Positions 3,204-40,471 of a stretch of 64,000 bases of DNA are shown in pieces. The position numbers and the translations under genes are program-made. The DNA lies in NCBI RefSeq assembly GCF_036365525.1, contig NC_090399.1, positions 15,127,558 to 15,191,557 on the forward strand, written 5' to 3'. Numbering within the stretch: the stretch's first letter is position 1; the number at the start of each line of letters is the position of its first letter. The notes under the pieces are model-generated. The model did not search any database. It had not been told where the DNA came from and saw nothing but the letters and a program-made list of their open reading frames with translations. The stretch comes from Heterodontus francisci (Eukaryota).

Positions 3204-3204
3204 A

Positions 3205-4420: not shown

Positions 4421-4564
4421 TGCCCAAACAGAAAGAAAAATGAAAATAAAAAAAAATTGACAATAATTTGTGAAAATGATCGATGATACAAATTACACAT
4501 GTGGATAAGGATATATATCACTCCAGGTATTCAAATTAGGGATCAAAGTAAATTAACCCCTTCA

Positions 4565-13880: not shown

Positions 13881-13884
13881 AATC

Positions 13885-18214: not shown

Positions 18215-18308
18215 AAGTTCCGAAGAAGGGTCCGAAACGTTAACTCTGCTTCTCTTTCCACAGATGCTGCCAGACCTGCTGAGTGGTTCCAGCATTTCTT
18301 GTTTTTGT
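18215..18308 (+). mobile_element. 94-bp Penelope pLTR mini-insertion with hammerhead-like motif
   Basis: Exact 16-bp TSD TTAAAATTAGATATAA (18199-18214, 18309-18324); insert matches the Penelope tail at 22143-22240. Confidence 0.85.
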
Positions 18309-18544
18309 TTAAAATTAGATATAATTCACAATGCATTTACTATAGATCAACGCCAATTTGCATGTTTGTAGAGTTCTTAAAGTAGAAAAAATGTTCCAAG
18401 GTATTTGAGTGATGTGTAATCAGAGAATAAAAAGACGCAGATTCAAGACTGGGCGTCGGAGAAACAGTCTGACAGCACAAGGAATGGTCCTGATTAGTAG
18501 TGGATGAATAGAGGTCTAAGTGGTATAGTGAAGTTTTCAGAGAG

Positions 18545-21500
18545 TCATAGTATGATAGAATTGTTACAGCACTGAAGGAGGCCATTCGGCCCATCGTGTC
18601 CGTGCTAGCTCCCTGCAAGCGCACTCACCTCGGCCCACACCCAGCATGTTTCCTGTCGCTCTGATTTGTTTCTCTTCAGATAAGTATCGAATTCCATTTT
18701 GAAAGACAACATTGAATGGGTCAACCGCACTCTCAGAAAGTGCATTTTTCCTCACGTTTACCCTCATGTTACCTTTGATTCTTTTGCCATTTAACTTAAA
18801 TCGGTGTCATTTGATTCTCGATCCTTCTCTGTATACTCTATCCACACCCCACTATTAAATCTCCCCTCAACCTTCTGTCCTCCAGCTTCTCCAAACTATC
18901 CGTGCAACTGAAATCCCTCATCTCTGGAACCATTCTTGTAATTCTTTTCTGCACTCTTTCCAAAGCCTTCACCTCCTTCCCAAAGTGTAGCTCCTAGACT
19001 TGGACACAATGCTCGAGTTGAGGCTGAACCAATGTTTTTATAAAGGTGCATCATAACTTCATTGCTTTTGTATAAAGCCCCAGGATTCTATATGCTTTAT
19101 TAACAACTTTCTCAACCTACCCTGCCACCTTCAACGATTTGTGTAAATATACCCACAGGTCCCTCTGCTCCTGCACCCCGTTTAGAATTGCACCCTCTAT
19201 TTTACTTATTTAGATGCAGCGCTGAAGCAGGCCCTTCGGCCCACCGAGTCTGTGCCAACCAGCAACCACCCATTTATATTAATCCTACATTAACCCCATA
19301 TTCTCGACCACATCCCCACCATTCTCCTCCCACCTACCTACACTAGGGGCAATTTACAATGGCCAATTTACCTATCAACCTGCAATTCTTTGGCTGTGGG
19401 AGGAAACCGGAGCACCAGGCGAAAACCCACGCAGACACAGGGAGAACTTGCAAACTCCGCACAGGCAGTACACAGAACTGAACCCAGGTCGCTGAAGCTG
19501 TGAGGCTGTAGTGCTAACCACTGCGCCACTGTGTTTTGCTTCCCCTTGTTCTTACTCCCAAATTGCACCTCTTCACACTTCCCTGCATTAAATTTCATCT
19601 CCCACATGACCGCCCATTTCACCAGCCTGTCCATGCCCTCTTGAAGTCTATCACTATCGTCCTCACAGTTTACAACACTTCCAAGTTTCGTGTCATCCGT
19701 AAATTTTGAAATTGTGCCCTGCACACCCAAGCCAAGCTCATTAATACAGATAAAGAAAAGCAGTGGTCCGAATATCAATCCCTGTGTAAACCCACTATAT
19801 ACAGTCCTCCAGTCCAATAAATGACCGTTTACCATGACTCGCTATTTCCTGTACTCAGCCAACTCCATCTCCATGCTGACACTGTCCTGTTTATCTTATG
19901 GACTTTTTAACGTTGCTGACTAGTCTGTTATGTGGCACTTTATCAACTGGCTTTTGTAAATCCATTTACACCACATCAACTTCATACCCGCATCAACCTT
20001 CTCTGTCACCTAATCAAAAAACTGAATTAAGTTAGTTTATCACGATTTGACCTTGACAAATCCGTGCTGGCGTTCCTTAGTTGATCAACATTTGTCGAAG
20101 TCACTGTTAATTTTGTCCCAGAATATAATTTCTAAAAGCTTTCCCAGCACCGAGGTTAAACTGACTGGGCTGCAGTTGCTGGACTTTTTCTTACCACTTT
20201 TTGAATTTGCAATTTGTCAGTCCTCTAATACCATCCATTTATCTGAGGAGGATTGGAAGATTATCGCCAGTGCCTCTACAATTTTCACCCTTACCTTCCT
20301 CAGTATCATAGGATGCATTTGATCAGTCCTGGTGATTATCTGCTTTAAGTACAGCCAAGCTTTCTAATTCCTTCTCTTGATCAATTTTTAACCCATTCTG
20401 TGTCTCAAATCCCTCTTATTTCGCTATGATTTGGGCAGTATCTTCTTGGTAAAAAATTAATACCTCAGCCCTGCCTTCTGCCTCCCTGTGCAAATCTTTT
20501 TTGTTCCCTAATCAGACCTACTCCTCTTTTTGCCACCCTTTTACTATCTATGTGCCAATAAAAGGCACTTGGGTTCCCTTTTATGTTAGTTGCCGGTCTC
20601 TTCTCATGCTCTCTCTTTGTTTCTCTTACTTGTGTTTTTTGTTTCACTTCCCCTCTGAACAATCTATATTCAGCCTGGTTCTCACTTCTATTATCCCCCT
20701 GACATCTGTCATACGCATCCTTTTCCTGTTTCATCGTACTCTCCATCTCTTTCATCATCCAGGGAGCTCTGGATTTGTTTCCCCTACCGTTCCACCTCAT
20801 GGAAATGGACCTTGTCTGTACCTGAACTATCTCCCCTTTTAGGGCAGCCCTTTATTCTGTTACAGTTTTGCCTGACAATCTTTGATTCCAATTTTGGGCC
20901 AGATCCGCTCTCACCACATTGAAATTAGCTCTCCTCCAATTAATTATTTCTACTCTGGATTGCGCCGCGTCCTTTTTTATAGCCAACCTAAACCTTATGG
21001 TACTATGATTACTGTTTCCTAAATGTTCCCTTACTGACACTTGATCCACTTGACCCATTTCGGTTCCTTAGAAATCGATCTAGGAATATTGGACCAGAAA
21101 CACACTGATCTAGAAGATGTTCCTGAATACACTCCAGAAACAATTCCCCCTCTCTGTACTTTACAGTATTGCTATCCCAGCCTATATTAGGATATTTGAA
21201 GCCCTCTATAATTACCCTCTATTGATTTTGCACCTCTCTGAAATTTCCTTGCATATTTGTTCCTTTATATCTTTCCCACTAGTTGGTGGCCTGTAGAATG
21301 TACTCCATAATGTAATGGTACATTTATTGTTTCTTATATCTAACCAAAGAGATCCTGTCATTGATCCCTCGAAGACATTCTCCTTAATCAATATTGCCAC
21401 CCTTTTCCCTCCTTCCCTATACTTCGATAACACTTTTTATTCAGTACTTAGTCCTGTCCTTTTTGAGCCAGATCTCCGTTATCATCATGAAATTATATTC

Positions 21501-21545
21501 GCACTTGGCTATCTGCCCCTGACGCTCACCAACCTTATTTACCAC
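18545..21545 (-). mobile_element. Degenerate CR1 ORF2 (APE + RT + 3'UTR) with an HE1 SINE inside
   Basis: ISKFTDDTKLG, IKGNPSAFY, FYRPP motifs; CR1 tail at ~18545-18600. Confidence 0.85.
19206..19533 (-). mobile_element. HE1-type V-SINE
   Basis: tRNA-like head CACAGTGGCGCAGTGGTTAGCAC, V-domain TGCGTGGGTTTT…GGTGCTCCGGTTTCCTCCCACA, CR1-derived tail. Confidence 0.9.
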
Positions 21546-22280
21546 ATTGGGGTGACCAAACAGAGACTGCGTGACTGCTTTGCGGACACCGCCGCTCAGT
21601 CCGAAAGCGTGACCCAAGCTTCCAGTCGTTGGCCATTTCAACACACCCCTCTGCTCTCATGCTCACATCTCTGTCCTGGGATTGCTGCAGTGTTCCAGTG
21701 AACATCAACACAAGCCTGAGGAGCAGCATCTCATTTACTGATTAGCCACACTACAGCCTGCCGGACTGAACATTGAGTTCAACAATTTCAGAGCATGACG
21801 GGCCCCTCATTTTACTTTTACCTTCAGTTATTTTTTATTTTTTCTTAAATTTTTTGTGTTTATTTCATTTTAGTTTGCTCAGTTTGTTTCTACTGTGCCT
21901 ACCCACTGTTTTTTCATATTTGTGCAAAAAGCTGTTCAGTTTTCAGTCCATTAACACCCTATCTGTACAAATGCTTTGTCTTTCATCACACCATTAACAT
22001 ATTGTTTGCCTTTGCTCCATGACCTTCGAGTCAGCTGTTCTGTGACCTTGTCCTATCAATACCTTCTCTTTTGTTATCTTTTGCCCCCCCCCCCCACTTC
22101 CGCTTTACTTGCTTAAAATCTTTTACATTTCTTATACCTGCCAGTTCTGAAGAAGGGTCACTGACCTGAAACGTTAACTCTGCTTCTCTCTCCACAGATG
22201 CTGCCAGACCTGCTGAGTTTTTTCCAGCACTTTCTGTTTTTATTTCAGATTTCCAGCATCCGCAGTATTTTGCTTTTTTT
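21545..22280 (+). mobile_element. Penelope-like element 3' part (GIY-YIG end + pLTR)
   Basis: HIGVTKQRLRDCFAD matches the YIGETKRRLGDRFAEH-type motif of the copy at 59546-59959; pLTR with hammerhead. Confidence 0.85.
22143..22179 (+). ncRNA. Minimal type I hammerhead ribozyme (Penelope-associated)
   Basis: AGTT-CTGAAGA-A-GGGTC act GACCT-GAAA-CGT-T-AACT: CUGANGA and GAAA cores, stem II hairpin, palindromic ACGT stem III, stem I AGTT/AACT. Confidence 0.75.
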
Positions 22281-22469
22281 CTAATATAGACCTTATTGCA
22301 TTCACTCTTACTTTGACCCCATCTAATGCCACGCTGTTTCTTACTCTATTGCTATGGGTGTCCCCCAATTCCTTGTGCGCCTTGTTTTTCCCTCTGTAAT
22401 GTTACCTGCTGGTTCCTAAACCCCTCCCCAACAGCATTAGAAAACTGCCCCGAAAGGGCATTTTTTTGA

Positions 22470-23450
22470 ATACATGGCTTCGGTGATGTCAGCAAAGAGA
22501 ATCATACAGATGAAGAAGCAAGAGATGGATCCTTTAGAGACTCCTGGGCTAAGGGTTTTGGGTAGAAAGAGCAGCCGTTACTAGAGAGGTCCTGGTTAAA
22601 ATTAAATGATTATGGTAGAGCCAAGTAAGAGCAGCCCCACGGAGGAATCCTGTGATAGTGGTGTCAACGTTTACAGGGAGGAGAAATGGTAGATCATTTC
22701 ACAGTAGCAGAACGTGCCACTCGTAACTTTGGTCAGGGTCGTTTTTATGTCGTGGTAGAGGCAGAAAACTGATTTAAGGGGAGATGGGTTCAGATCAGGG
22801 AGGCGACAGCACGTTAAGGGCCTTGGTGAGGAAAGGATGGTTGAAGATAGGACATTAGCTCAAAAGGATAGAAAGATGCACCGCAGCAATTTGCCAAGGC
22901 TCCTTCCACAGCACCCCTAAACCCGCTAGCTTTATCACCTAGAAGAACAAGGACAGCATCTTCAAACTCCCCTCCAAGCTGTACATCATTCTGCCTTAGA
23001 AATATATCACCGGTCCTTCATCATTGCTGGCCCAAAACCCTACTTAACAGTAGTGTAGATGCACGTGTATACGGACTGCAGCGGTTCATGGATGCAGCTC
23101 AATATCACCTGCTCAAGGGCAATAAGGAGTGGGCAATAAATATTGACTTTGCCAGTGATGTCCACATCCTGTGAATGAATAAATAAAAAACACGATCTTG
23201 AGAGGGGGGTAATGGCAACCACTTTGAAAGGTAGGGTGACAGCGTCTGCTTAAATGCAACTATTTGAAATATTGGCTAAAAACAGTGTCAGGAAGGGACA
23301 TTGGGTGATTAGTTTAGTAGGAATGGAGGTCAGGAAATCAGGACGTAGGTCTTATGGATGAGTTCAATTTAGAAGGGGTGTGGGGAAAAGGGCAGATAAA
23401 AGGTGTCAGTGCAATGATGAAGCGGGACTGAGGAAGATTTGGCTTAGCAG
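22470..23450 (-). mobile_element. Old L2-like RT fragments (with a Zenon-type tail inserted on + at ~22878-23190)
   Basis: Minus strand near 22720-22775 reads as a decayed QSGFRxxHSTETALTKVTND L2 motif. Confidence 0.55.
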
Positions 23451-23456
23451 ACAAGA

Positions 23457-23745
23457 GGCAGCACAGTTAGCACCACAGCCTCCAGCTCCAGCGACCCAGG
23501 GTCAGTTCTGGGTACTGCCTGTGCGAAGTTTGCAAGTTCTCCCGGTGACCACATGGATTTTCTCGGGGTACTCCAGTTTCCTCCCACATGCCAAGACTTG
23601 TGGGTTGATTGGTAAATTGCTCCTAGGAAAATTGAGGGAAAGTGGGGATGTGAGAGGAAAATGGGATTAAAGTAGGATTAGTATCAATGGGTGGTTGATG
23701 GTCAGCTTGGACTCGGTGGGCCGAAGGGCCTGTTTCAGTGCTATA
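23457..23745 (+). mobile_element. HE1-type V-SINE
   Basis: Homologous to 19206-19533 and 54571-54899. Confidence 0.85.
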
Positions 23746-23754
23746 GCTAACAAA

Positions 23755-25690
23755 GAACAATACAGCACAGGAACAGGCCATTCGGCCCTCCAGGCCTGCG
23801 CCGATCTTGATGCCTGCCTAAACTAGAGCCTTTTGCACTTCCGGGGACTGTATCCCTCTATTCCCATCCGATTCATGTATTTGTAAAGATGCCTCTTAAA
23901 CGTCATTATCGTACCTGCTTCCACCACCTCCCCCGGCAGCAAGTTCCAGGCACTCACCACCCTCTGTGTAAAGAATTTGCCTCGCACATCCCCTCTAAAC
24001 TTTGCCCCTCTCACCTTAAAACTATGTCCCCTAGTAACTGACTCCTCCACCCTGGGATAAAGCTTCTGACTATCCACTCTGTCCATGCCGCTTATACCTT
24101 TGTAAACCTCTATCATGTCACCCCTCTACCTCCGTCGTTCCAGTGAAAACAATCCGAGTTTATCCAACCTCTCCTCGTACCTACTGCCCTCCAGACCAGG
24201 CAACATCCTGGTAAACCTCCTCTGTACCCTCTCCAAAGCCTCCGCGTCCTTCTGGTAGTGTGGCGACCAGAATTGCATGCAATATTCTAAGTGTGGCCTA
24301 ACTAAAGTTCTGTACAGCTGCAACATGACTTGCCAATTTTTATACTCTATGGCCCGAGCGATGAAAGCAAGCATGCCGCATGCCTTCTTGACTACCTTAT
24401 CCACCTGCGTTGCCACTTTCAGTGACCTGTGGACCTGTATGCCCAGATCTCTCTGCCTGTCAATACGCCAAAGGGTTCTGCCATTTATTGCATACTTCCC
24501 ACCTGCATGAGATCTTCCAAAATGCATTACCTCACATTTGTCTGAATTAAACTCCATCTGCCATTTCTCTGTCCAAGTCTCCAACCGATCTATATCCTGC
24601 TGTATCCTCTGACAATCCTCATCACGATCTGTAACTCCACCAACCTTTCTGTCGTCCGTAAACTTACTATTCAGACCAGCTACATTTTCCTCCAAATCAT
24701 TTGTATATACTACAAAGAGCAAAGGTCCCAGCACTGATCTCTGCGGAACACTACTAGTCACAGCCCTCCATTCAGAAAAGAACCCTTCCACTGCTACCCT
24801 CTGTCTTCTATGACTGAACCAGTTCTGTATCCATCTTTCCAGCTCACCTCTGATCCCTTGTGACTTCAGCTTTTGCTGAAGTCCATATAGATAACATCCA
24901 CTGCCCTTCCTTCAAGAATCATCTTTGTCACTTCCTCAAAACACTCAATCAAATTAGTGAGACACGACCTCCCCTTCACAAAACCATGCTGCCTCTTGCT
25001 AATAAGTTCATTTGTTTCCAAATGGGAGTAAATCCTGTCCCGAAGAATCCTCTCTAATAATTTCCCTACCACTGATGTAAGGATCACCGGCCTATAATTT
25101 CCTGGATTATCCTTACCACCCTTCTTAAACAAAGGAACATTGGCTGTTCTCCAGTCCTCTGGGACCTCACCTGTAGCCAATGAGGATGCAAAGATTTCTG
25201 TCAAGGCCCCAGCAATTTCTTCCCTTGCCTCCCTCAGTATTCTGGGGTAGATCCCATCAGGCCCTGGGGACTTAGCGACCTTAATGCTTTGCAAGACACC
25301 CAATACCTCCTCATTTTTGATGATGAGATGACTGAGACTATCTACACTCCCTTCCCTAGGCTCATCATCCACCAAGTCCTTCTCTTTTGTGAATACTGAT
25401 GCAAAATACTCATTTAGTACCTCGCCCATTTCTTGTGGCTCCACACATAGATTCCCTTCTTTGTCCTTGAGCGGGCCAACCCTTTCCCTAGTTGCCCTCT
25501 TGCTCTTTATATATGTATAAAAAGCCTTGGGATTATCCTTAATCCTGTTTGCCAATGACTTTTCATGACCCCTTTTAACCGTCCTGACTCCTTACTTAAG
25601 TTCCTTTCTACTGTCTTTATATTCCTCAAGGGATTCGTCTGTTCCTAGCCTTCCAGCCCTTACGAATGCTTCCTTTTTCTTTTTGACTAG
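23755..25690 (-). mobile_element. 5'-truncated young CR1 (RT + 3'UTR)
   Basis: ORFs 24866-25555, 24126-24791 and 23823-24116 closely resemble ORF2 of the 6811-10933 element. Confidence 0.92.
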
Positions 25691-25714
25691 AGATCCAAGT
25701 CGTTGAATAAATAA

Positions 25715-25820
25715 GAGCAAAATATTGCTGGAAATCTGAAATAAAAATAGAAAATGCTGGAAATACTCAGCGGGTCTGGAGAGAGAAACAGAGTTAACGA
25801 TTCAGGTCGCTGATCAGATG
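25715..25820 (-). mobile_element. Penelope pLTR remnant
   Basis: aaatgctggaaatactcagc…agagttaacg, reverse complement of the 22170-22270 tail. Confidence 0.7.
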
Positions 25821-26672
25821 GTCGCTGTCTTTGGGAGGATGAATTGCATGAGTTCCTCGCACTTGTTAAAAATGAGAGCGTAGGTGGGGAAAGTTCCTTA
25901 AGGTAATAGAGAAAAGGAAACCACGGCTATTGTTACCATGCAGGGTAATCTTTGAACAGTGGGTGGTTTCTGTAAAGGAAAGCGGGCCCTGTAAGAGTTT
26001 AATGTGACAAGTCACATCTGGGAATACATGGCTAATCCGGTTTGTGCCACGTATCGTCATATTTGTCCTCCCTTGGATTTAAGGAAGCAAATATGGGGGT
26101 CATACCAAAGCGATCAAGTGAAATGAGAAATTGTGAAGTTTGTATTAGGAAAAAGGGCACCAAATGCAAATCGCCTTTTCAGATTAGTGTTTCAGAAAAT
26201 TACCATGTCGATAACACTGCCAAAGTATGATGCATGAAGTTGTTTGTGATAAGAGAAAAGACACCTCATTAACGTATGTGTCCTTATATCACCATACTTA
26301 AATGATAAACGTAATCTTTATGTTCATTAGGATGACAGACGCTAACGTTATCCAGTAGGATATATTACCACAATAACAATCCAATGTGCCATCCAATATT
26401 TCCGGGTTAGCTGCAGAATAGCCTGCAAGGTGAATTTACCTCTACTCTGCTTGAACAACACCCCTTCACACAAAGTTCCGAAAAGGGACCCTTACTGTCC
26501 AAGTCTACTTATTTACTCTCGCACCTGATGTCCTCTGTGACTGAGATTGCCAATTCAATACTAAATTGTACTTTTTGGAGCGGTTTTGATGTTGTGGGTC
26601 AATGTCCATTAGGAAGCTGTGAACCCTTGCAGTCAACAGAGAGACAGGAGTCGTTTAGTCCATCAGTCTGGG

Positions 26673-26777
26673 CTATAGGTAAGTCCGGGTCATAATGTGG
26701 GCGCAGCACGTCTCCTTAAGCATTATTATCGATTTCATTACGTCTGGTTTCATTTTATAGGCACTTCCCTTATTTTG
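26673..26777 (-). CDS. NCR3: Candidate exon 7 (QNKGSAYKMKPD…; either reads to TAG at 26673 or splices at 26742 to 26625-26599)
   Basis: gaatgttttag| acceptor in phase 0; open for 34 codons; internal GAC|gtaatg donor possible. Confidence 0.4.
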   Translation of the reverse strand, partial: QNKGSAYKMKPDVMKSIIMLKETCCAHIMTRTYL

Positions 26778-29700
26778 CTAAAACATTCGTAACAGGGAAA
26801 AACCTTCAGAAGCATATTTAGGATATTGAAAATAGGTAGAGAACACAGCAATCCCATCGTTGGAGATAATGATTGGCGAATTACTGCAGCCTCGTTGTTC
26901 ATCGCAACCATCTATTATTGCACATACAAAACATCTCACCATCCAATAACTCTTACTTGTGACGTTGGCTGTGGATTAATTGTTGCTGTGAAAATGAGAG
27001 GAAGGGGAATGGGTCAGAATTATATAATGCAAGACACATTAGCATAAACACACACAGACAGACATATTCATATGTGTCAGTAGAACCTTGCGATCAAATG
27101 AATTTGAATAAAATAATTTGCAACAGTATTTTCATATTTAGCTTGTTTTGATTAACCAGCAATGATAATCAATGTAGAATACATCATGTGAAGGCAATTA
27201 CAGCTCACGTACCATACATTGCGTTGGTCCCACTGTGATTTCTGTAATAAGAGAGATGATATTTGAATTTAAAAATTATGCACGTTAAATTCTGAACAAT
27301 CATCAATTCAATAAGATTTGACATTTCCTGTACCTTTTTAGCCTCAGAATAACTGAAAGAAAATAAGGTAGACGTTAATATAATTGTTTTAAGGTAATTA
27401 CTTGCCGATCCTTTCTCTTATTAAAATATCGTAAAACTGACCGTCAACAAACGCACCCACAACCGAATCGATAGGCCGTACAGTGAATCTGGTCACTATG
27501 TGCACGGACATTATAATGATATTTCCTCCGAATATTATTTCTAATGATGTCCTAAGTGTGTTCTAAAATAATTGTTCATACTATAAGTGTCTCTGATTGC
27601 ACTAGTAACGCTGACAAACTCCAGAAATGCATTAACTGGATGACTCCTCATAGCGGCCAGAGCAATTGCCCCGCATTATAGCGAAAGCGTAATAGTTAAA
27701 TAGGGACCAGCGTGTTTCACAGAGTTACAGACCTTTGTTTTGCCAGATCAGTCGACATGTGAGAATCATTATGGTCATGCCCAGCAACGTGAGCGCACCT
27801 CCCAATAGAAGTAGCAGGTTAATATCCCTGCTCTTTTCTCCCCGAATTCTGCCTGAAATAAGGAGTTGAGGTCAAAAAATTAATATGATAAGCTGAGGAA
27901 AAACGATTTTGTTTGCATCAAAAAAGAGCATGATTGTAAAAATACATCAATAAATCAAGTCTTGCATTTCTCTAGCACCTTTCACGGCCCAAGGAAGTCC
28001 TAAAGCACTTCACGGCCGGTGACGTTCTTTTGAAGTATAGCTACGGTTGTAATGTAGGAAACGCAGCAGCCAGTTTGCGCACAGCAAGATCCCACAAACA
28101 GCAATGTGATAATGAACAGATAATTGTTTTTAGTGGTGCCGATTGTAGGCTTAATATTGTCCAGGGCACCGACGATACCTCCCATGCACTTCGTCGAAAC
28201 AGAGTCATGGGATCTTTTACATTCACTTAACAGGGCAGACATCAATTAGAGTCTTGGTTTAAGGTTTCATCCAAAAGCCGGCACCTCTGGCAGTGCAGCA
28301 TTCCTCCATACTGCCCTTGGATATTTGGGCTCAAGCCTCTGGAGTGGGACCATAATAACCAAAATATCAAAATTGGAACAGATTAGTTCCAACCCTATTC
28401 CGCTACAATTCCCACATCAGCTTTAATAAGAGCATTATCTAGGTACTTCCCCCTACATTAAATTTCATGCTCACTCTGAAGTATTCAAGGATTCTGGTGT
28501 CACTGGCAGCTCCCAAATGACGATTGCTTAACGTTGAGACCAGGGGTAAGACTGGGCACTTGACGCAGCATCACAACCCAGCACAGCCTGCTGGACATTG
28601 GACATGGTCGGGGACGCGACACCGGTGGCATTGCATCGGTAGCGTGATACGCACACTTGCAGTTTTCGGTTCTATTGACTTCAATTGGACTTCAATCATA
28701 TTGACTTCAATAAAATGGAATATTGTGTTGTATAACGGGCTGCAGATGGGATTCGGCATGTTTTGCATCAACGCCAAAGACCAATTTCACCTCCCCCATC
28801 ACCCCCGCCCTAAATGTACACATAAATACAAACACATTCCATGGCATAACATATAAGATTTAAGAATGACCTGAAGGAGTTACTCTGAATGATTTCCCCA
28901 TCCCTGGTGCCCAGATTCCTGCGGCCAATTGTCCTCTGGTTAGTTGCAGTCTGCAAATTGACGCTAGGATCTCCCTGGCCTGTAAAAATCGAGTACGGCT
29001 ATAAAATTATAATACCTGTTTAATAAATGATTACTCTAGGATGCCACTTACGCCTCACTTCCAGTTTGGTGCCATTTCCATCTCTCACACCGGTTTCCAT
29101 TAAGCTTACGCGACAGTAATAGGTGTCTGTATCTTTCTCAATCAAGTCGGAGATATTGATGAATATTCTGTTGTTGGTAAATGAATCACTGCCCGATTTT
29201 TCCAGCCGACCTTCATAAAATGGACTCTTGTCCAGTTTGTACCCATCCGGTTTACCCCGTGTCCAGTGAGCAGTGCCGATCAAGGTTACGTTTCCTTCAA
29301 AGTCCAGAGCACAGTTCAGTGTCACCGACTCCCCCTCATCTGCAGTTCGAAAGGGAGGGAACTGGAAAACGGTGACACTTATCTTTCCACCTGCTGAATG
29401 GAAACACTTTAACTTTAAAGGTGATAAGTAGTAAACGTCATTCCTCTCTAACGCTGTCTGACAATTGCCGTTGGTAAAGGTAATTATCATTTTACATTAT
29501 ACAGATATCGAGATGAAAAGTACAACAGCAGTCATTGGAAACGTCAAACACATTACACACAGGCAGGACGTGCTCTAGATATCTAGCAAATCAGTCAGGC
29601 TCTGAAGAGAAGGACAGGTTAGCGTTTGGTTGAGTTGCTCCGCCTTCTCGTCTGAACCAAGAGCTAAACTAATAAAATTCAAGTGTAGATCAATTACCTG

Positions 29701-32060
29701 TGATATTGAATTCTATGAAATTGATATTTTCATTATCCTCGTTCATTCAACCACTGTTTTCTAATTCCAGTTGTTTTCTACCAATGTGGGACAAAATAGA
29801 ACTTGTTTTACATTTCGCCTTAGGCGTTCCTCACTTTACAAGGAACTACAGCAACATTTGTAAAATGGTGCGAATTTGAAAGAAGTTCTGTGATGAGATG
29901 CCGATATGTAAACACATAGTCAGCCACTTATTTGGTTCAGCCCGTGGTGTTATTGACTTCGCGTGAAATCTGACAAGTAAACAATGATATAATGTCGTAA
30001 ATGTTGGTTCTATATTTTGGCAAGAGGAAGTTGTTACGCTAACGCTCCGTCCTTTATTTCAATTAAGGTGTTAACCTATTTATGTCGAACATGTGAACGT
30101 CTTCCCTAAGATTGACGAAAGATGCTGATATCATGTCAGCATGTGATCCGTCTCTTTACATTGTGCTTATTGCTGCAGCCACGTCTCATTCCACATGCGC
30201 AGAACATTGGGAGAATCTAGAACAAGGGGGCACGATATTAAAATTAGAGCGAGGCCGTTAAGGAGGCAAATCGGGAAGGTCTTTTTCACTGGTCATCTTT
30301 TAATTGCCAGTGGGATGATTTCCTCCGCTTTATCTGTGGTGACATTGTAAACAAATGCGTCGTGTGTTCCAATGTTTCTGACAAAAATTCTATAGTTTGA
30401 TCAGAAATTTCAATGCCGAAAAAAATCTCACTATATTTGCGAAATCGGTACCCAGCTGAATGAGCGGAAATAATCCCCAGTGGCCATAAAAATGTACGTG
30501 GAAAATCCCAGAACACTGTGGGCGTAATTTTAGCTTTTGGCGATAGTGGGACACAACAGATATCAAATTCGCTGCCCATTATACACATCACATCCGTACA
30601 CAAAATTAAAATAATAATAATGGTGTATTATTTCTTGTAGTTCATATTCCGATTCCGACTGATAAGATAATAGCGGAAATTTCCCTGCACGCCCAGTATG
30701 TCTAAGTTAATAAACTTAGACTTGAGATGCAGACAATGGGTGAGGTGGGCATCAGGACACAATCAGAGAACCCAGGAGCATTGCGAGTCATATAAAAAGG
30801 AAGACAGGGAACGAGTAAGACAAATGCACAGATGAACAGTGAGATACTGTAAGTAATCGGAGGAGATGCTGAGTAGTCGACGGGAGAATGTGGTTGAATA
30901 TCAGAGCGTGGCATTGAGAAAGCAACAGCAGAAGAGAAACAAAAAGGCAAGAAGGACAGGGCTAGAAAAACATAAATGAGAAGAAGGGGACAAGCAGTGG
31001 GGCAGCTATAGGATTTAATACTGCTATATTGCTTTAATTTGGGATATGAACAACGCGCAAGAACTGCTTGTTCTGATACTGGGAAGAGACAATTATTTGC
31101 ATGCAGTACAACTTTTTTTTCGCGGTGGGCCGAAGGTCCTGTTTCTACGCTGTACGACTCAATGGATTGGTAGAAAGAGCCTGGTGTCGCCAGAAAATTT
31201 TGTGGAACACATAAAGGAAAAGGCTCACAAGGGGATGTTCACTGATGATTACACAGTGTTCAATTCCATTGGAAATTCCTCAGATAATGAAGCAATCCAT
31301 GCTGGCAGGCAGCAAGACCTGGACAACATCCAGGCTTGAGCTGACAATTGGCGAGTAAAAGAAGTGCCAGCGATGCTCACATCTCGGGAATGAATTAAAA
31401 ACAAACGATTATGCGTTTATAAATGTAAAAAAAACGCTGAACTTGTATAGCTCCCCCATCACATCGTCGAATTGTATAAAATTGATTCATAATTACTTGT
31501 TTTGGAGTACAGCCACTGCTGTCATGAAATCAAATGCAGCAGTCAATTTATGTCAGGAACATCCCACAAATGGCTTAAACCGAATGAAGATTTTCGCCTG
31601 GAATTTCTGTTCACTCCATCTCCCGGCGTAACTTCGGCGGAAGATCGGGTAAAAGAAATAACAACCAATCTTCCACGCAAATTACGGCGGCGACCGAGAG
31701 AAAGTCTCGAACACACTGTAATCTCACTTAGAGGAGCCTGGTCAATTGCTTAACACAGTGATATCACTATTTCTTAGTTAATGCGCCAGCTTTCTGTAAG
31801 CTGCAGGGGGTAAAATTAACAGTTGATACCCATGAGCCTTTTTATGACTATTTCAAATAGTAAAATTATCAGTTAGAAGCTGAAAATGCTTTCTTAAAAG
31901 CAAGTCTAGTTTTTGCAAGATTTTAAAATTTAAACTAACGGTATTTTCTCGCCTATCGCCATTCTCCATAAGAGGCAACAACAAAAAAATCAATGAACTC
32001 ACCCGTGCATATTGCAAAGAAAATCAACAGCATTGAAGTGGGCTGTTGACTTAATAGCAT
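26673..32060 (-). CDS. NCR3: NKp30/NCR3-like single VJ-Ig-domain type I membrane receptor (spliced; about 218-232 aa depending on the last exon). Family member, 1:1 orthology not established
   Basis: Exons 32060-32003, 29390-29052, 27852-27733, 27352-27334, 27241-27213, 26985-26957 and 26777-(26673), all with GT-AG sites and compatible phases. Product: MLLSQQPTSMLLIFFAICTG-GKISVTVFQ…C…W…YYCRV…GNGTKLEVR-RRIRGEKSRDINLLLLLGGALTLLGMTIMILTCRLIWQNK-VILRLK-RNHSGTNAMY-ATINPQPTSQ-QNKGSAYKMKPD…. Confidence 0.8.
26957..26985 (-). CDS. NCR3: Exon 6, 29-nt cytoplasmic micro-exon (ATINPQPTSQ)
   Basis: ctctcattttcacag|CA ACA…CAA|gtaaga, phase 1-0. Confidence 0.65.
27213..27241 (-). CDS. NCR3: Exon 5, 29-nt cytoplasmic micro-exon (RNHSGTNAMY)
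   Basis: tctctcttattacag|A AAT…TAT G|gtacgt, phase 2-1. Confidence 0.65.
27334..27352 (-). CDS. NCR3: Exon 4, 19-nt cytoplasmic micro-exon (VILRLK)
   Basis: ttattttctttcag|TTATTCTGAGGCTAAAAAG|gtacag, phase 1-2. Confidence 0.65.
27733..27852 (-). CDS. NCR3: Exon 3, stalk + transmembrane
   Basis: ttatttcag|GC…AAA G|gtctgt, 120 nt, phase 1-1; INLLLLLGGALTLLGMTIMILTC hydrophobic helix. Confidence 0.85.
27956..28350 (-). mobile_element. DeuSINE (SacSINE1/AmnSINE1-like) in intron 2
   Basis: Deu-domain and tail: gtaaaagatcccatg…tgtttgtgggatcttgctgtgcgcaaactggctgctgcgtttcctacattacaac…aatgcaag. Confidence 0.8.
29052..29390 (-). CDS. NCR3: Exon 2, VJ-type Ig domain of the NKp30-like gene
   Basis: cattcagcag|GT…AGG C|gtaagt, 339 nt, phase 1-1. 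B-strand C, C-strand W, DTDTYYC and J-like GNGTKLEV in one exon; aligns by eye to human NKp30 (VSQPP…EG…C…IGSVTW…GRL…YVCRV…GNGTRLVV). Confidence 0.93.
31227..31405 (+). mobile_element. Zenon-like LINE scrap in intron 1
   Basis: GMFTDDYTVF…QQDLDNIQA plus tail remnant. Confidence 0.7.
32003..32060 (-). CDS. NCR3: Exon 1, leader peptide of the NKp30-like gene
   Basis: aagATG CTA…MLLSQQPTSMLLIFFAICT + G|gtgagt; 58 nt, phase 1, matching the V exon; hydrophobic core MLLIFFAIC. Confidence 0.75.
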
Positions 32061-32560
32061 CTTCTGTGTATTTGTGAAGAGGTTGGAAGTAATAGAATCA
32101 ATGGCGCCAGCAAAGTCAGCAAGGTGAGAACATTTAGCACCAACCCACACAGAGTGCGAATGGAATTATTTGCGGTTTCCAGTTGAGAACACAGGATACA
32201 CCCACACTTCACTGCTGCACAGAATTAAAAGCTTTTAGTCTTTAGAGCAGATTTTTTTAACTTCACGAGTCATGTAAGAATGCAGCGTTGATGGAGTTTG
32301 ATAAGCACACATCATAGGAAATATAGCACCGATAGTATCGATTAGCCATGCTGTCATTTGCGCGGTTTTATAATTAGACTGTAAGTTCCATGTCCCTAAA
32401 TTGCATATTGCTCAATGATGATGGTTTTGAAGCTGAATGAAGGGGCGGAAAGACGCGACAGACGTGACCCAAAGTTTACATTCAGCTAATCATAAATCTG
32501 TGATTTCAGCGCCAATATTACCGAGGTAATGCTAATGATTTTCTATTGGGCCGAGCCACC
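32061..32560 (-). promoter_or_regulatory. Putative proximal promoter of the NKp30-like gene
   Basis: Unique sequence upstream of the leader ATG with ETS-like GGAAGT (~32085), RUNX-like TGCGGTT (32171-32177), GGGGCGGAA (~32442) and CCAAT/ATTGG (~32512, ~32545); motif presence only. Confidence 0.3.
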
Positions 32561-32637
32561 GCCACGTGTCAACAATGAACATCTTGACAGAAACTCCAGC
32601 TCCTGTACAGGTTTGCAGTAATCGGGTAACTGTATCA

Positions 32638-33045
32638 GCCGTGGTTCAGGGGATCGCATTCTTGCCTCTAAATTGGGAGATTGTGAATTCAAGTTCAGCT
32701 GTAGCAGACTTAAGCACCAAAACAAAACTGATCTTACGAGAGCGCTGCACTGCCGGAGGTGCCGTCTTTCGGATTCGAAAATGCACAGAAGCGAAAGGTA
32801 CCCCTTTAGGTGAACATGAGGGCCCTATGGCGCTGCTCTGAGCAAGTGGCGTTGTGCTCTGGCCGATATTTATCCTCAAACAAAAACAGATTATCTGGTC
32901 ATTATCTCAATACTGTTTGCGGAATCCGACTGTGCTCAAATTGTATTTTCCTCCAGTGCAACAGCGGCTGCATTTCACAAAGTGCTTCATTGGCTGTAAA
33001 GCGCAGAGGCACATCGTGAGAGGCGTTATATAAATGCCAGTTTTT
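32638..33045 (+). mobile_element. DeuSINE (SacSINE1-like)
   Basis: tRNA-like head, gctgcactgccggaggtgccgtctttcggat Deu core, tail gttatataaatgccag. Confidence 0.8.
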
Positions 33046-33367
33046 TTTATTTTAAACTGTCGATGACTTCGCCTGAAACCAAGAGACAGATGGAATCATG
33101 TTGGATGGCGCGATATGCTGTGCTTGAGTGCAAATCCGGTACTGATTATAGTCAGAGACAAATCAATATAAGCCATTCTTGGCCTTTTCTTTGCAGTTGC
33201 AGCCTATATACAGTGCAAAATCATTTATATTAGTTCTGCTTATTTATATTATCGGACGGATGGTTCACAAACATAATTCAGTTCTAAATTATTAATCCTC
33301 CATTCCCCAGTTTATATTTTTTTTCAGTAACGCACGCTTTCACATACAAAGCTACTAGTCAAATGCA

Positions 33368-34620
33368 GAATCACAAAATCACAAAATTGTTACAGTGCAG
33401 AAGGAGGCCATTCGGCCCATCGTGTCCACACCGGCTCTCCGACAGAGCAATTCACTCAGTTCCATTCCGCTCTCTTCTCCCCGTAACCCTGCAAATTCTT
33501 CCTTTTCATATAATTGTCTAACTCTCTTTTGAATGCTTCGATTGAACCTGCCTCCACCACACTCTCAGGCAGCGCATTCAAGAACTTAACTACTCAGCGT
33601 GAGTTTTGCCAAATGTCACTTTTGCTTCTCTTACCAAGTACTTTAAATATGTGCCCTCTCATTCTCAGTCCTTTCACGACTGGGAACTGTTTCTCTCTGT
33701 CTACTCTGTCCAGACTCTTCATGATTTTGAATTCCTCCATCAAATCACCTCTCAGCCTTTTCTTCTCCAAGGAAAACAATCCTAACTTCTCCAATCTATT
33801 TTCATAACTGAAATTCCTCATCCCTAGAACCATTCTTGTGAATCTTTTCTGCACTCTCTCCAATGCCTTCACATCTTTCCTAAACGCCCAGGACTGGATG
33901 CAATACTCCAGATGAGGCCAAGCGAGTGTCTTATACAAGTTCAACATGACTTCCTTGCTCTTGCATTCTATGCCCCAATTAATGAAGCCCAGGATACTGT
34001 ATGCTTTATGAACCGCTCTCTCAATCTGTCCTACCACCTTCAATGACTTATGCACATATACACCCAGGCCCCCCTGCTCCTGCACCCCCTTTAGAATTGT
34101 AACTTTATTTTATATTGTCTGTCCGTGTTCTTCCTACCAAAATGAATCACCACTTTTTTCTCCATTGAATCTCATCTGCCTCCTGTCTGCCCATTCCACC
34201 GATTGTCTGTTTCCTTTTGATGTTCCACACTATTCTCCTCACAGTTCACAATGCTTTTAAGTTTCGTATCATCTTCATACTTTGAAATTGTGCCCTGTAT
34301 ACCAAGGTTTAGGTCATTAAAATATATCAGGAAAAGCAAAGGTCCCGACACTGACCCCTGAGGAGCTCCACTACAAACCTTCCTCTAGCCCTAATAACAT
34401 CCATTAGCCACTATTCTTTGCTTCCTGTCACTCAGCCAATTACATATCCATGTTGCTATCATACCTTTTATTCCATGGGCTATAGGTTTGCTCACATGTC
34501 TGTTGTGTGGCGCTGTATCAAATGCCTTTTGAAAGTCCATGTACCACACATCAACGGCGTTACCCTCATCAACCCTCTCTGTTACCTTCTCAAAAAAACT
34601 TCAGCCAGTTAGGTAAACAT
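33368..34620 (-). mobile_element. CR1 RT/3' fragment
   Basis: ORF 33594-34085, LYKTLAWPHLEYC…RLRGDLME. Confidence 0.88.
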
Positions 34621-35440
34621 TATTTTCTTTATTTGTTCCATGGAATGTGGGCATCACTGGCTAGGCCAGCATTTATTGCCCGTCCTTAATTGCCCGCGAG
34701 AAGATGGTGGTGAGATGCCTTCTTGAACTGCTGCAGTCCATTTGGTGTAGGTACAACTACAGTGCTGTTAGGAAGGGAGTTCTAGGATTTTGACTCAGTG
34801 ACAGTGAAGGAACAGCAATATAGTACCAAGTCAGGATGGTGTGTGGCTTGGAGGGGAAACTGCAGGTGGTGGTGTTCCAATGCATTTCCTGCCCTTTTCC
34901 TTCTAGGTGGTACAGGTCACGGATTTGGAGTGTGCGGTCTAAGGAGCCTTGGTGCATTGCTGCAGTGCATCTTGTAGATGGTACACACTGCTGCTATTGT
35001 GCATCGGTGGTGGAGGGAGTGAATGTTTGTGCATGGTGTGCCAATCAAGTGGGCTGTTTTGTCCTGGGTGGTGTCAAGCTTCTGGAGTGTTGTTGGAGCT
35101 GCACCCATCCAGGCAAGTGGAGAGTATTCCATCACACTCCTGACTTGGGCCTTGTAGATGGTGGACAGGTTTTGAGGAGTCAGGAGGTGAGTCACAGGAT
35201 TCCTAGCCTCTGACTTGCTCTTGTAGTCATGGTATTTATATGGCGACTCCAGTTCAATTTCTGCTCAGTGGTAACCCCTAGGATGTTGACAGTGGGGATT
35301 CAGCAATTGTAATACCGTTGAATATCAAGGGGAGATGGTTAGATTCTCTCTTGTTGGAGGTTCCCATTGCCTGGCACTGATGTGGTGCGAATGTTACTTG
35401 CCATTTATCAGCCTAAGCCTGGATATTTTCTAGGTCTTGC
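34621..35440 (-). mobile_element. CR1-Zenon-like LINE 3' part
   Basis: TIYKAQVRSVMEYSPLAW…HSLHHR; tail at the left end. Confidence 0.88.
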
Positions 35441-35449
35441 TGAATTCTT

Positions 35450-36800
35450 CCCCATCTGATCCCTTAGCACTAAGGCAGTCCCAGTCAATATTAGGGAAGT
35501 GAAAATCACCTACTATTACAACCCTATATTTCCTACACCTATCTTGATTTCCCTACACATATGCTCCTCCAATTCCCTCTGACTATTGGGGGGGCCTATA
35601 GTATAATCCCATCAAAGTGATCACCCCTTTCTTATTTCTAAGTTCTATCCCTATGGCCTCGCTGGACGTTCCCCCCAGGATATTCTCTCTAAGTACTGCC
35701 GTGATGTCCTCCCTAATCAATAGTGAACCCCCCCCACCCCTCCTGTCTTACCTACATCTCTGTCACGCTGGAAGCATTGGTACCGGGAGCATTGAGCTGC
35801 AAATCCTGCCCATCCCTCAACCACGTTTCCGTAATAGCTATAATATCACAATCCCATATACCGATCCATGCTCTGAGTTCATCTTACCTGTAAGGCTTTT
35901 TGCATTAAAGTAAATATAGTTTAGCCTGCCAGACCTTCCACACTCCTTGTCCTGCCCCTGCCCCTGCCTGGCCTGCCTACTGGACTTGCTTACTTTAACC
36001 TCTACATTTGTCTCAACTATCTCATCAGAGAGACTACTACTTTGGGTCCCACCCCCCACCCCCCCCTACCAGACTAGTTTAAACCCTCCCGAGTACTACT
36101 TGCAAACCTCCCCGCAAGGATATTGGTCCCCTTCCAGTTCAGATGCACCCTGTCCCTCTTGTGCAGGTCACCTCTGCACCAGAAGAAATCCCAATGATCC
36201 AAGTAGCTGTAGCCCTCCCGCCTACGCCAGCTCTTCAGCCACACATTCATTTGCCTTATCCTCCTATTCCTACCCTCACTAGCACGTGGCACAGGGAGTA
36301 ATCCTGAGATTACAACCCAAGAGGTCCTGCTTTTTAACCTTCTGCCTAACTCCCTATATTTACTTTGCAGGACCTCATCTCTCTTCCTGCCTACGTCATT
36401 AATACCAATATGGACCACGACCTCTGGCTGCACACCCTCACCTTTCAGAATGTCCTGCAGCTGCTCCGAGACATCCTTGACCCTAGCACCAGGGAGGCAA
36501 CATACCATCCTGGAGTCTCGTTTGCGGCCACAGAAACACCTATCTGCACCCCTTACGATAGAATCCCCAATCACTATAGCTCTTCCACCCCTTTTCCTCC
36601 CCTGCTGTGCCCTCCGTGGTGCCACGAACTTGGCTGTTGCTGCTTTCCCCTGGGAGGTCATCCCCCCCCTCCCCCCCTCCCCCCCCCCCCCCCCCCAACA
36701 GTATCGAAAGCGGTATATCTGTTTGAGAGGGGGATGGCCACAGGGGACTCCTGCATTACTTGCCTGCGCCTACTATTCCGTTTGGTGGTCACCCATCCCT
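35450..36800 (-). mobile_element. CR1 ORF1 esterase + start of ORF2
   Basis: AIVIGDSIVRG, VVVHIGIND, VHLNWKG; then YFNAKSL…. Confidence 0.88.
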
Positions 36801-38773
36801 AAAATCATGTTAGTTTCGTCAGCCATAATACATTGTCTTAAGTGCACACTATCTGTTCGCAATCCGGTTATTTCATTTTTTGCGTTCTTCGAGTACCTTT
36901 ATTGTCGACTTACATCTCAAAAGACCTTAGTTTGGGATTTTCCAGTCACCGTGCATTAACAGGCACAAGGTGACGTTGATGTACCTCATTCCGCTGTTTC
37001 AACCCCCTGGGCCAAAGTAATGTCCTTCTGCCCTGCCCTTTCTCAGGTCGATCGCCCATGACATGTCCGTCCTTGCGCACTTTCTGAACCTTGTCGACCC
37101 GCTTTCCCCTTCTTGTCCGTTTCCCATTACCGGGAATCAACAATTTGTGTCGTTTACAGAAGTGTTTGCAACACTTTATTCCCAATCGAAGAGCTCACAG
37201 CCTTTGATATCCAAAATGATCAACTCCCAGAGCCGGGTAACACGCCGAAGAATAAGGAGGAACTCGAGATGGGGGTGGGGGGGGGGGGGGGGGGATTTCA
37301 CATGATGCTGCTGGTGGGAGTGGGGACCAAGGGCTTTGATCTGAAGCTGGTGAGGGAAGGTGATAGAGTCTGAGGGGGAGGTGGGTTGAACTCGTTGGGC
37401 AGAGTGAGAGTTGTGGGCCGAGGAGTGCATGGAAAGGAATGAGGCTGATTGTATAATGGCGTGAAGTCAAAGTGGAGAGGGTGATTGACTGCAGAGTTCA
37501 GGAGAAGAACAGGTGAGCTGATATGAGTTCCACGCTGAGCAGATGGGGTAGAAGGGGAGCTGGGAAACATAGGCAAAGAATCATTGAGAAGGGAGGAACG
37601 GCATCTGCTGGATGGCCTCCCATCTTCAACTTTTCATGAGCTCATTCAAAAGATAAACTGAACTGAAGACAAAAGATACATAGCACTAATGGGAAATGAG
37701 ATTGTAAAATGTACTGGGCGGGATCCAATGTGAAACATCACTTAGTGGTCAAGCGTACATTTGTCTTCGGACTTCCAATTTGACTTAATTCTTGTTATTT
37801 AACGGAGGCAGTGATCAATAACTAGGTTGTAGTATAATACAACTGGGAAGATGGAAATCTGTGTATTTTAGCGAGACAGAACATTAAAGGCCACAAATGA
37901 GAGGGGACAATCTTGCCATATGGTGCATTGGTCAGTTACTGTAAAATGATTGTTGCATTAGCGTCAATATGCATCCTAAATTTCAGGAAGAGTATGTGGG
38001 TTTGATGTGATTAATATTTGCAGAGATGGAGGAATTCTCAATTAGATTTGAAGCAATGAGACAATTTGGCATTTCCCCCAAATTTACCTGCAGGGCCAAT
38101 ATAACGAAAAGAAATTGTTATGTATTCAGGTACCTGATCTCAAATATTTCATTTGTCGCGGTTGCTTAATGAAAATCGTGGATATGGTATCACCAAATTC
38201 GCATCCGTTGATGCAAATACAATGGCGTCACAAAATGCGTATCATTTATGTTCTTGAGAGGATAACTAAAAATGGCGTGAAATTTAACGTGAATGTCGTA
38301 TTAAGGTCATAATTGGTCACATTGTCGGTAAGTTCAGTGAAGGCAGGACTGTAAACGTGTTCGTCATTGAATTGAAATGCTGCTGATGTTGAGATTCTCA
38401 TTTTACACGTAAGCTCATTTACATCGACAAGCCTTGCAAACCGACCTGTCTGCATGCGGTTGGTTTACTTCGTACGTGACTGCGCTCAGATCAGCGTCGA
38501 GTCTGTTCAGGCTGTCTGCTGCTCGGCATGTTAGTTATTTTCCAGTCAGCGTCACTATTTATAATACTCTGTCCGCAAAGCGTGCACTTTAGATCCGCTT
38601 ATTGAACCCACTACGGACAGAAAGTATCTGTGAGACAGAGCTCAACTCTATCTCAATACAATTGTACACGATGTTCAGAGAACGGCACTTAAAAAAAAAC
38701 ATTCTTGGTATGCAGGTGTCACATTTAATACCTAATCCTGGTTACATTCGGAAGGTGTAGATTGGGCAAAGTC

Positions 38774-39073: not shown

Positions 39074-40471
39074 AAGGTGGTCTGGCACTTCAAAGCGTAG
39101 TTAAGTATCAACCGCTTTGGACTGGGACTGGAGTTACATTTTGGCCAGGCCCTGCAAGGATTCGTTCCCTTCGGACATCAGTGAACCAGTTGTGCTTTAC
39201 AACAACAGCTTCAGTCACTTTGACCAATGCTAATTTTTTCTTGACATTTTGTTTTTAAAAAACAACTTAAATACTCAATTTGCTTTGATGGCGATTTGAA
39301 CTCACCCTTATTCAGGTTATCAATCCAACCCTGTGTATTACTAGTCTAGCAACATGTCCACCTCACGACCGCTGCTAACAGGAACGGAAGACCCGATCCA
39401 GATTCATGCCAAGTGCGCAGACCCTTTAAATAGAAGCAATTCATTTATTATCAAACGCTTTATTTGTGAGCATCTCTTCCAAACGTTTTTCGCAAACAAC
39501 TTTCAGTTCAAATACACAATCCCTTTCTGTGCAGCAGCAGACACAGTTATGATACTGTTCATGTATCAGGCTGGGATGTTTTAATACTGTGGATGCCGGA
39601 TACCCTCAGCGAGGTCCTACAACACAAGGGAGAAGATGCGCGTTTCTCTGAAAAGCAGAACCATCGAATTGCTTGTAAGGCAAGTGAAGGTATCTCAGGG
39701 GTGCCCTGCACTTCATGTATGCAGCAGCAAGCTGGGTTGGTCATGCCCTGAAAGGAGCATCACGTGTTATTAGATGAATTGCCGGCATCCTTTCCAGCCT
39801 GTGCTCTTCCCCGCCCGATCATCCGCCCGTGAGGAGGGAAGCGGAAATCTCGCACGAACTTTCTAACATTCCAGACAGTCTTTTCAGACGGAAGTTTGCG
39901 TTAGTGCATTCAGCTATTTCTTGCAAAGGTCAGCTGGTCACTCAAAAAAGGAAATGGATCAATTTAAAGAGGAGTTTTCCAGACTGGAATTCCCACCGGG
40001 GCTGTGGAATTCAGACACTGCTCAGCACCAGTGAAAATGCGCTGCAGGTGGCCAATCGACGCACGCATTAAAATACAGCACATGAATGGCTCGACTGATC
40101 TTTACTAATTTCCCCATTTACACACAAACTTCACGGGTTCAGTGTATTTGTCACGTTGGAGACGTCCGAACTCCGGGACCACAGCCGGGGGCATTTAGTA
40201 AGACTGTCGCAGCTAAATAAGAAGTATAAAAACGTCTGATAATAAGATTCAAACATAAGCAGCGTTGCAATAAATGAAACTCGCAGGTGAACGCAATTGA
40301 AAGGAGATTATTTTTATATGGACGGTACTCTCGGAAACCAAATAATCTCGCACCTTTTATTTCAAGGCGTCTCACTTAGGTATGATGAAATTTTTATTTT
40401 TGGTTATCGTTTGAAAGACTTGAAATTCAATACGGTCGGGTCTAAGGACAACTAAGCTTACTTTCTAAGAG

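Follow-up and report, generated by a model that had tools for sequence, protein, structure and literature searches.

The locus described here raises the question of whether a receptor of the NKp30 type, which is activating in mammals, has been built as an inhibitory receptor in a cartilaginous fish. It lies in a 64,000-nucleotide stretch of the horn shark (Heterodontus francisci) genome, contig NC_090399.1, positions 15,127,558 to 15,191,557. We refer to this 64-kb stretch as the window and count all positions below from its first letter; it contains one NCR3-like gene, one V pseudogene and transposon fragments. An original prediction, made from the DNA sequence, had placed here an NKp30-like receptor whose membrane span is uncharged and in whose tail a PD-1-like YATI motif is created across an exon junction. 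Our analysis suggests that the NCR3-like gene probably encodes an inhibitory receptor of the PD-1 kind that recruits SHP-type phosphatases. This reading is based on the canonical tyrosine motifs of the shark orthologues and on the architecture of the predicted protein.

The gene is encoded on the minus strand, where seven coding exons extend from 32060 to 18049 over approximately 14 kb (Table 1). In an exon-by-exon check, these exons reproduce 241 of the 241 residues of isoform X1 (P0010) of the H. francisci RefSeq protein "natural cytotoxicity triggering receptor 3-like". Every exon has AG and GT at its borders, the 12 splice sites are canonical throughout, and the reading frame is unbroken. 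Window exons were searched singly (the V exon through its open frame, the membrane exon alone), and comparisons with public proteins were made at full length. A word search with the V-exon open frame gave a 100% match to H. francisci NCR3-like in RefSeq, whose cluster for this gene holds four isoforms, X1 to X4, and tblastn with one RefSeq isoform (P0001) as query gave 100% identity over 42 residues at the last coding exon. The gene is already annotated in RefSeq and belongs to a known shark gene family; Kinlein et al. 2021 are said to have described shark NCR3 (NKp30) family genes in the nurse shark. The NCR3 protein of that species (Ginglymostoma cirratum; QTT61901.1, P0002) is 60% identical to the horn shark protein over its full length, and for the V domain the identity is 75% (E=2.8e-48). 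The two proteins (238 and 241 residues) share the same leader, an uncharged span, an ILRLKR juxtamembrane box and a C-terminal xEYATI. Chiloscyllium, Mustelus, Scyliorhinus and Heptranchias have orthologues of the same layout. Across sharks of ancient divergence the V-domain identity is 68-75%, and the leader exon has homologous counterparts in the Mustelus and Scyliorhinus orthologues. On these matches, the horn shark locus is an orthologue belonging to one subtype of the NCR3 (NKp30) gene family of sharks.

The V exon encodes a 113-residue V-set domain (Pfam PF07686, E=4.3e-10). Its V and J-like parts (YYCRV...GNGTKLEV; GxGTxLxV) lie within one non-rearranging exon, as anticipated for the NKp30-type VJ domain of the original prediction. 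The family comparison of this domain was made against solved structures. Human NKp30 is the first match by phmmer (E=2e-9), followed by antibody V domains in single-chain variable fragments. A profile of nine shark sequences likewise places NKp30 first (E=2e-11, 46 bits), with antibody VL (37 bits) and SIRPalpha (34 bits) behind it. An AlphaFold model of the V exon has a predicted local distance difference test (pLDDT) score of 82 and a predicted template modelling (pTM) score of 0.78. When this model was submitted to Foldseek, NKp30 accounted for the top four matches (TM score 0.79, 31-32% identity), with IgNAR V and SIRPalpha next. NKp30 therefore came first in all three comparisons, and in none of them did the V domain group with another family. 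The V domain thus appears closer to NKp30 than to other V-domain families, and this match, together with the identity to nurse shark NCR3, agrees with the predicted NKp30-family single-V receptor. Human NKp30 (NCR3; PDB 3NOI, 3PV6 and 6YJP) resembles the horn shark protein in having a single VJ-type domain with GNGT-x-L.

It is barely credible that the protein is a member of the PD-1/CD28 family and not a relative of NKp30. The C-terminal EYATI core of its tail does equal the core of the PD-1 consensus for the ITSM (immunoreceptor tyrosine-based switch motif). However, neither the best 60 profile matches (all E<7e-5) nor the best 50 Foldseek matches include PD-1, CD28 or CTLA-4; both lists are topped by NKp30, and the full J-like GxGTxLxV motif is present. 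Behind antibody V domains, SIRPalpha is the family that comes next in both the profile and the fold search (E 1e-7). It is an inhibitory receptor bearing immunoreceptor tyrosine-based inhibitory motifs (ITIMs), with activating paired relatives, but differs from the shark protein in having three immunoglobulin (Ig) domains and CD47 as its ligand, and is less similar to it than NKp30. The teleost NITR-like receptors (E 1e-12 to 1e-4 with the shark profile) resemble the shark protein in the VJ type of their V domain, which carries a GxGT J motif, in the lack of charge in the span and in the two Yxx[LV] motifs of the tail; they differ in possessing two Ig domains, a length of 330-400 residues, other tail sequences and an identity of 24-32%.

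The membrane span has a hydrophobic core of 23 residues, INLLLLLGGALTLLGMTIMILTC (residues 144-166), with the best hydropathy window at 146-164. The core contains no D, E, K, R or H, in line with the predicted absence of Arg and Lys. Arg and Asp flank it closely, within SRD at one border and CRLIW at the other. A Pfam search of the membrane exon gave no match, as expected. Of the five other orthologues with a span, four share the uncharged core with the horn shark protein; the exceptions are a His in the catshark and a Glu in Heptranchias, which fall within the scan window at its outer edge. In human NKp30 the membrane span contains an Arg, signalling runs through CD3zeta/FcRgamma, and the tail is short. 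The horn shark protein differs from it by the lack of an embedded charge and by a 68-residue tail with five tyrosines. The basic residue within the span that characterizes activating NKp30 is missing, and Arg is found only at the two borders. Since the span holds no charged residue, the protein would not be expected to pair with CD3zeta/FcRgamma-type adaptors as mammalian NKp30 does. We weighed the possibility of an activating receptor like mammalian NKp30, coupled through its membrane span to an adaptor with an immunoreceptor tyrosine-based activation motif (ITAM). The V domain is of the NKp30 type, one Arg lies two residues ahead of the hydrophobic core, and another lies at the cytoplasmic end of the core. 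An activating receptor is nevertheless very improbable, given a core that is free of charge over 23 residues, a long, tyrosine-rich tail, ITIM-type motifs in the orthologues, and no ITAM (YxxL/I-x6-8-YxxL/I) found in the horn shark tail.

The five tyrosines make up 7.4% of the cytoplasmic tail, against 3.7% in the whole protein. Their contexts are AMYATI, QVYSNR, QQYAKV, VEYETH and, at the very end, AEYATIK, and all but AMYATI are encoded by the last coding exon. This exon is preceded by an intron of 8.8 kb (18178-26956) that is packed with reverse-transcriptase fragments of long interspersed nuclear elements (LINEs), for example at 24126-25555 and 19368-19835, which is why the original prediction had missed the exon. 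A different last exon, with a second tyrosine in SAYKM, had been proposed at 26673-26790 on the minus strand. It is in frame and has a usable acceptor, but it can be discarded, as it has zero depth in bins 26450-26847 of all three RNA runs described below and is absent from the four RefSeq isoforms.

An ITIM is defined as (S/I/V/L)xYxx(I/V/L) and an ITSM as TxYxx(V/I) (PMC12151841). Across the shark orthologues, the tail contains a module made of [I/L/V]xYAKV and [T/V]EYATI, in canonical ITIM/ITSM forms, the two sites being spaced 23 residues apart and the second lying near the C-terminus. The sites read IHYAKV and TEYATI in Chiloscyllium plagiosum (P0013), the only orthologue with a true ITSM, and VQYAKV and VEYATI in Scyliorhinus (catshark). 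In Mustelus they read LHYAKV and DEYATI, the latter not canonical. In the nurse shark protein the second site is the canonical VEYATI, but the YAKV site no longer has its Tyr (CNAKV), whereas the horn shark protein (QQYAKV and AEYATI) keeps both tyrosines, with Q and A at position -2 and an extra AMYATI. Among the other species, the four whose tail is complete and in frame each have one or two canonical motifs. The parts that are invariant among orthologues are Y-A-K-V-N and E-Y-A-T-I, which correspond to positions -1 to +4. In the horn shark protein, the two tyrosines are Y214 and Y237, 23 residues apart. An uncharged span and two tail motifs at tandem-SH2 spacing are features of ITIM-bearing inhibitory receptors, and on sequence grounds both are present here. 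Composition-preserving shuffles of the 68-residue tail gave P=0.018 for at least three Yxx[IVL] motifs; for a repeated Tyr 4-mer, P was 0.0017.

The likeness to PD-1 (PDCD1) comprises the single V domain, the uncharged span and the tandem tyrosine module near the C-terminus, where the 23-residue Tyr spacing resembles the tandem ITIM-ITSM layout. The PD-1 ITSM consensus in jawed vertebrates is (T/V)EYATIx(F/Y), and the C-SH2 domain of SHP-2 favours Ala at +1 and Ile at +3 (PMC12151841). Differences from PD-1 are also clear: the V domain is not PD-1-like, the first shark motif is YAKV where PD-1 has the type YG(E/V)L, and the shark protein ends one residue past the second motif, so that it is without the +5 aromatic residue. 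A word search with the tail alone (residues 171-241 of isoform X1) found, among three candidates, only the protein itself and the Chiloscyllium plagiosum orthologue, and is uninformative for other families. An ESM Atlas search with the tail gave no match usable by its features, the structural rows being meaningless for a disordered tail. A literature search found nothing on this shark subtype or on ITIM-bearing NKp30 in cartilaginous fish, although the tail motifs may have been described earlier.

The junction motif of the original prediction stands apart from this conserved module. Joined together, the three micro-exons read ...TNAMY followed by ATINPQPTSQ; the Tyr codon closes micro-exon 2 and Ala-Thr-Ile opens micro-exon 3. 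The PD-1-like YATI is made in RNA at this junction, as predicted, but it is not conserved. The orthologues read TTYAVP, ATYAPA or ATDAPA, AIPASA, or PIYETV, and the conserved EYATI is in the missed exon, 8.8 kb further on. On this comparison, AMYATI is specific to the horn shark lineage. The Ala at its -2 position had correctly been called non-canonical, and AMYATI fits neither the ITIM nor the ITSM definition. The two horn shark YATI copies are encoded by TAT GCA ACA ATT and TAC GCC ACT ATC. They differ at four of four third-codon positions, which argues that they did not arise by recent duplication or conversion. This difference, and the rarity of a repeated Tyr 4-mer in the shuffles, speak for selection acting on the peptide.

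We propose that the receptor would act as a type I membrane protein with a signal peptide, one VJ-type V domain, a short stalk, an uncharged span and a 68-residue tail. The ligand is presumably a B7H6-like molecule. Ligand binding would lead Src-family kinases to phosphorylate tail tyrosines, whereupon SHP-type phosphatases would bind the two conserved motifs through their tandem SH2 domains and activation would be damped, in a manner similar to that of PD-1 with its ITIM/ITSM pair. Given Gln and Ala at the -2 positions and the added AMYATI, recruitment in the horn shark may be weaker than in the nurse shark, bamboo shark and catshark, or differently tuned.

We compared these gene models with RNA from three runs of one sample of unspecified tissue, in the form of Logan contigs, which lose rare variants. 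The alignment covered 5951 bases, and the last coding exon is outside the aligned stretch. Spliced contigs are present in the three runs and are 99-100% identical to the window, which identifies them as RNA of H. francisci. The V exon is covered in all three runs, as is its joint to the membrane exon. The joint 26985>27213, which creates the YATI junction, is present in runs X1 and X2; like the V-membrane joint, it has GT..AG ends on the minus strand. The contigs over micro-exons 2 and 3 show no difference from the genome. Micro-exon 1, at 19 nt, is too short for separate listing, and its inclusion was read from bin depths. In run X2, bin 27246-27444 has a depth of 4.14, which equals 43.4 x 19/199; in run X1 its depth of 11.9 equals 112.4 x 19/199 + 5.97 x 39/199, where the second term comes from a retained-intron contig. 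The bin depths thus place micro-exon 1 inside the contigs and indicate that the frame giving YATI is used in the assembled transcripts. A 1492-nt contig of run X2 passes from the 272-nt alternative exon through the V exon, the membrane exon and the micro-exons and continues for about 687 nt past micro-exon 3. The micro-exon 3 bin has 32 aligned bases, made up of the 29 of the exon and "gta", which is common to the start of the intron and the start of the exon at 18177. These three extra bases are consistent with the RefSeq junction from micro-exon 3 to 18177.

At the 5' end, the V exon is joined to the 272-nt exon (29393>29698; runs X1 and X2, GT..AG), which is in turn joined to the leader donor (29969>32003; run X1, GT..AG). 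The predicted leader is therefore the leader of isoform X1 and its donor is used, but the contigs join it to the 272-nt exon and not to the V exon. Each of the three frames of the 272-nt exon contains stops, and the leader frame extends only 5 codons into the exon before it ends. The next in-frame ATG, at 29746, is the start of the leaderless RefSeq isoforms X2 and X3 (P0001 and P0011). The depth of the exon equals that of the contig of the gene, so it is not a high-copy repeat. RefSeq models X1 and X4 use a direct leader-to-V junction.

Several observations weigh against an SHP-recruiting inhibitory receptor. None of the five horn shark tail tyrosines (0/5) lies in a canonical ITIM or ITSM, because the -2 residues at the three Yxx[IV] sites are A, Q and A. 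The same position varies among orthologues, being Q, I, L or V at the YAKV site and A, V, T or D at the EYATI site (D in Mustelus), and replacement of the hydrophobic -2 residue of a KIR ITIM by Ala reportedly abolished SHP-1 binding. In addition, the major assembled transcript in the one sample of unspecified tissue includes the 272-nt exon and so breaks the signal-peptide frame, and the direct leader-to-V joint was not seen in the RNA contigs of the three runs, from an assembly that drops rare variants.

The variable -2 residue bears on whether the same protein might use its tyrosines mainly in ways other than SHP recruitment. They could serve as YxxPhi sorting signals that set the surface level through AP-2, as in CTLA-4, or dock adaptors of the SAP/EAT-2 type (a "switch"), SHIP or Csk. 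The part of each motif that is invariant is -1 to +4 and not the SHP-relevant -2, YATI and YAKV both fit Yxx-hydrophobic, and the SH2 domain of Csk prefers pY-(T/A/S)-(K/R/Q/N)-(M/I/V/R), which fits YAKV. The TEYATI of one orthologue would suit a switch, but the ITSM Thr occurs in that species only. A classical inhibitory layout is nonetheless formed by the two motifs at tandem-SH2 spacing, by ITIMs that are canonical in most orthologues and by the span free of charge, and we judge these other uses unlikely, though they deserve serious consideration.

The transcript data also bear on whether the horn shark gene is a weakened or largely unproductive copy from which little signalling-competent receptor is made. 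Such a copy would account for the presence of the 272-nt exon at full contig depth, for the missing leader-to-V joint, and for the absence of canonical motifs where four other species retain one or two, and there is a dead paralogue 8 kb upstream. The gene nonetheless has an intact frame and a full set of canonical splice sites, the V domain is 68-75% identical across sharks that are only distantly related, and the EYATI and YAKVN cores are kept. A minor productive isoform could escape the Logan contigs, and RefSeq X1 and X4 do join leader to V. Given that rare variants are dropped and the tissue is unspecified, it does not follow that a productive isoform is absent. We consider an unproductive copy rather improbable and retain the inhibitory receptor as the preferred reading.

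Splicing can remove function from the product in two ways, by skipping the 19-nt micro-exon, which affects the tail frame, and by including the 272-nt exon, which affects the signal peptide. RefSeq isoform X4 (P0012) skips the 19-nt micro-exon, and the resulting frame shift leaves the rest of the tail without motifs. H. francisci X4 and Heptranchias perlo X2 (P0009) use the same alternative frame of the last exon, ending ...IPIVAVMRQFPSNTPK and ...IPIMAVVSRFPCIMSK, respectively. A motif-less tail isoform may be common to these distant sharks, or the likeness may merely follow from nucleotide conservation. In the predicted X2 isoforms of Scyliorhinus canicula (P0006 and P0008), the V exon is joined straight to micro-exon 1, and skipping of the membrane exon leaves a tail without an anchor. 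A contig of run X1 at 27406-27762 (minus strand; depth 5.97, against 77.7 for the spliced form) extends from the membrane exon into the next intron and represents unspliced or intron-retaining RNA.

A more far-reaching reading concerns the origin of the module. The xxYAKV...(T/V)EYATI tail would be homologous to the ITIM/ITSM tail of PD-1 and not convergent with it; the ancestral single-V receptor for B7 ligands would have been an inhibitory checkpoint, and the Arg-bearing, activating NKp30 of mammals would be derived. On this view the horn shark copy would be a checkpoint tunable by splicing, given its third YATI, the 19-nt micro-exon that sets the tail frame and the 5' exon that interrupts the signal peptide. 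We regard this as a long shot. One conserved NKp30 subtype, found from Heptranchias and Heterodontus to the catsharks and carpet sharks, is built like an inhibitory checkpoint receptor, unlike activating mammalian NKp30. Its tail offers a concrete, testable module for asking how activating and inhibitory signalling split among receptors for B7 ligands in early jawed vertebrates. The horn shark gene itself is of modest interest for its C-terminal EYATI core identical to that of PD-1, its loss of the canonical -2 residues and its frame-breaking 5' exon.

Table 1. Exons of the horn shark NCR3-like gene, with positions in the window.
Feature	Position	Strand	Remarks
Leader (signal peptide) exon	32060-32003	-	58 nt; ATG at 32060, gtgagt donor after 32003, phase 1; residues 1-19 of isoform X1
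Alternative exon between leader and V	29969-29698	-	272 nt; RNA joints with GT..AG ends, full contig depth
V exon	29393-29052	-	342 nt; phase 1 at both ends; single VJ-type V-set Ig domain; J-like GNGTKLEV
Stalk/membrane exon	27852-27733	-	120 nt; RNA joint to V exon in three runs
Micro-exon 1	27352-27334	-	19 nt; V-ILRLK; inclusion sets the tail reading frame
Micro-exon 2	27241-27213	-	29 nt; R-NHSGTNAMY and first base of the Ala codon
Micro-exon 3	26985-26957	-	29 nt; A-TINPQPTSQ; completes AMYATI over the junction; ends in phase 0
Last coding exon	18177-18049	-	129 nt including stop (42 codons and TGA); acceptor cttag; 3' untranslated region onward below 18049

A separate stalk exon was considered at approximately 28885-28990, where an open segment is flanked by AG and GT. 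It was rejected, as its end phase is wrong for the membrane exon and RNA depth is zero across 28838-29036. Three differences between RNA and the assembly were noted. The first, A>G at 29131, is found in all three runs; it falls within the V exon, at the third position of a codon for Asp, and is synonymous. The second, G>A at 27705, is intronic, and the third, C>T at 29761, is in the 272-nt exon and was seen in run X2 only. Two intronic segments have very high RNA word depth, 28042-28240 (about 20,000-38,000) and 31226-31424 (about 2,300-7,300), and both show numerous short contigs and loose ends. Evidently these are high-copy repeats, like LINEs or short interspersed nuclear elements (SINEs), that are transcribed elsewhere in the genome, and not parts of the gene.

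The Chiloscyllium plagiosum RefSeq model (287 residues) begins with about 45 residues that resemble reverse transcriptase and stand ahead of the true leader, and its first exon is probably mis-predicted. Elsewhere in the window, a listing of open reading frames at 44300-45000 showed no open frame with obvious Ig features, a listing that a decayed exon would escape. The decayed NCR3-like V pseudogene was found with tblastn at 40471-40755 on the plus strand. It shares 30-35% identity with the V domains of NCR3-like proteins from sharks, contains three in-frame stops, and is arranged head-to-head with the live gene, approximately 8 kb from the 5' end of the latter.

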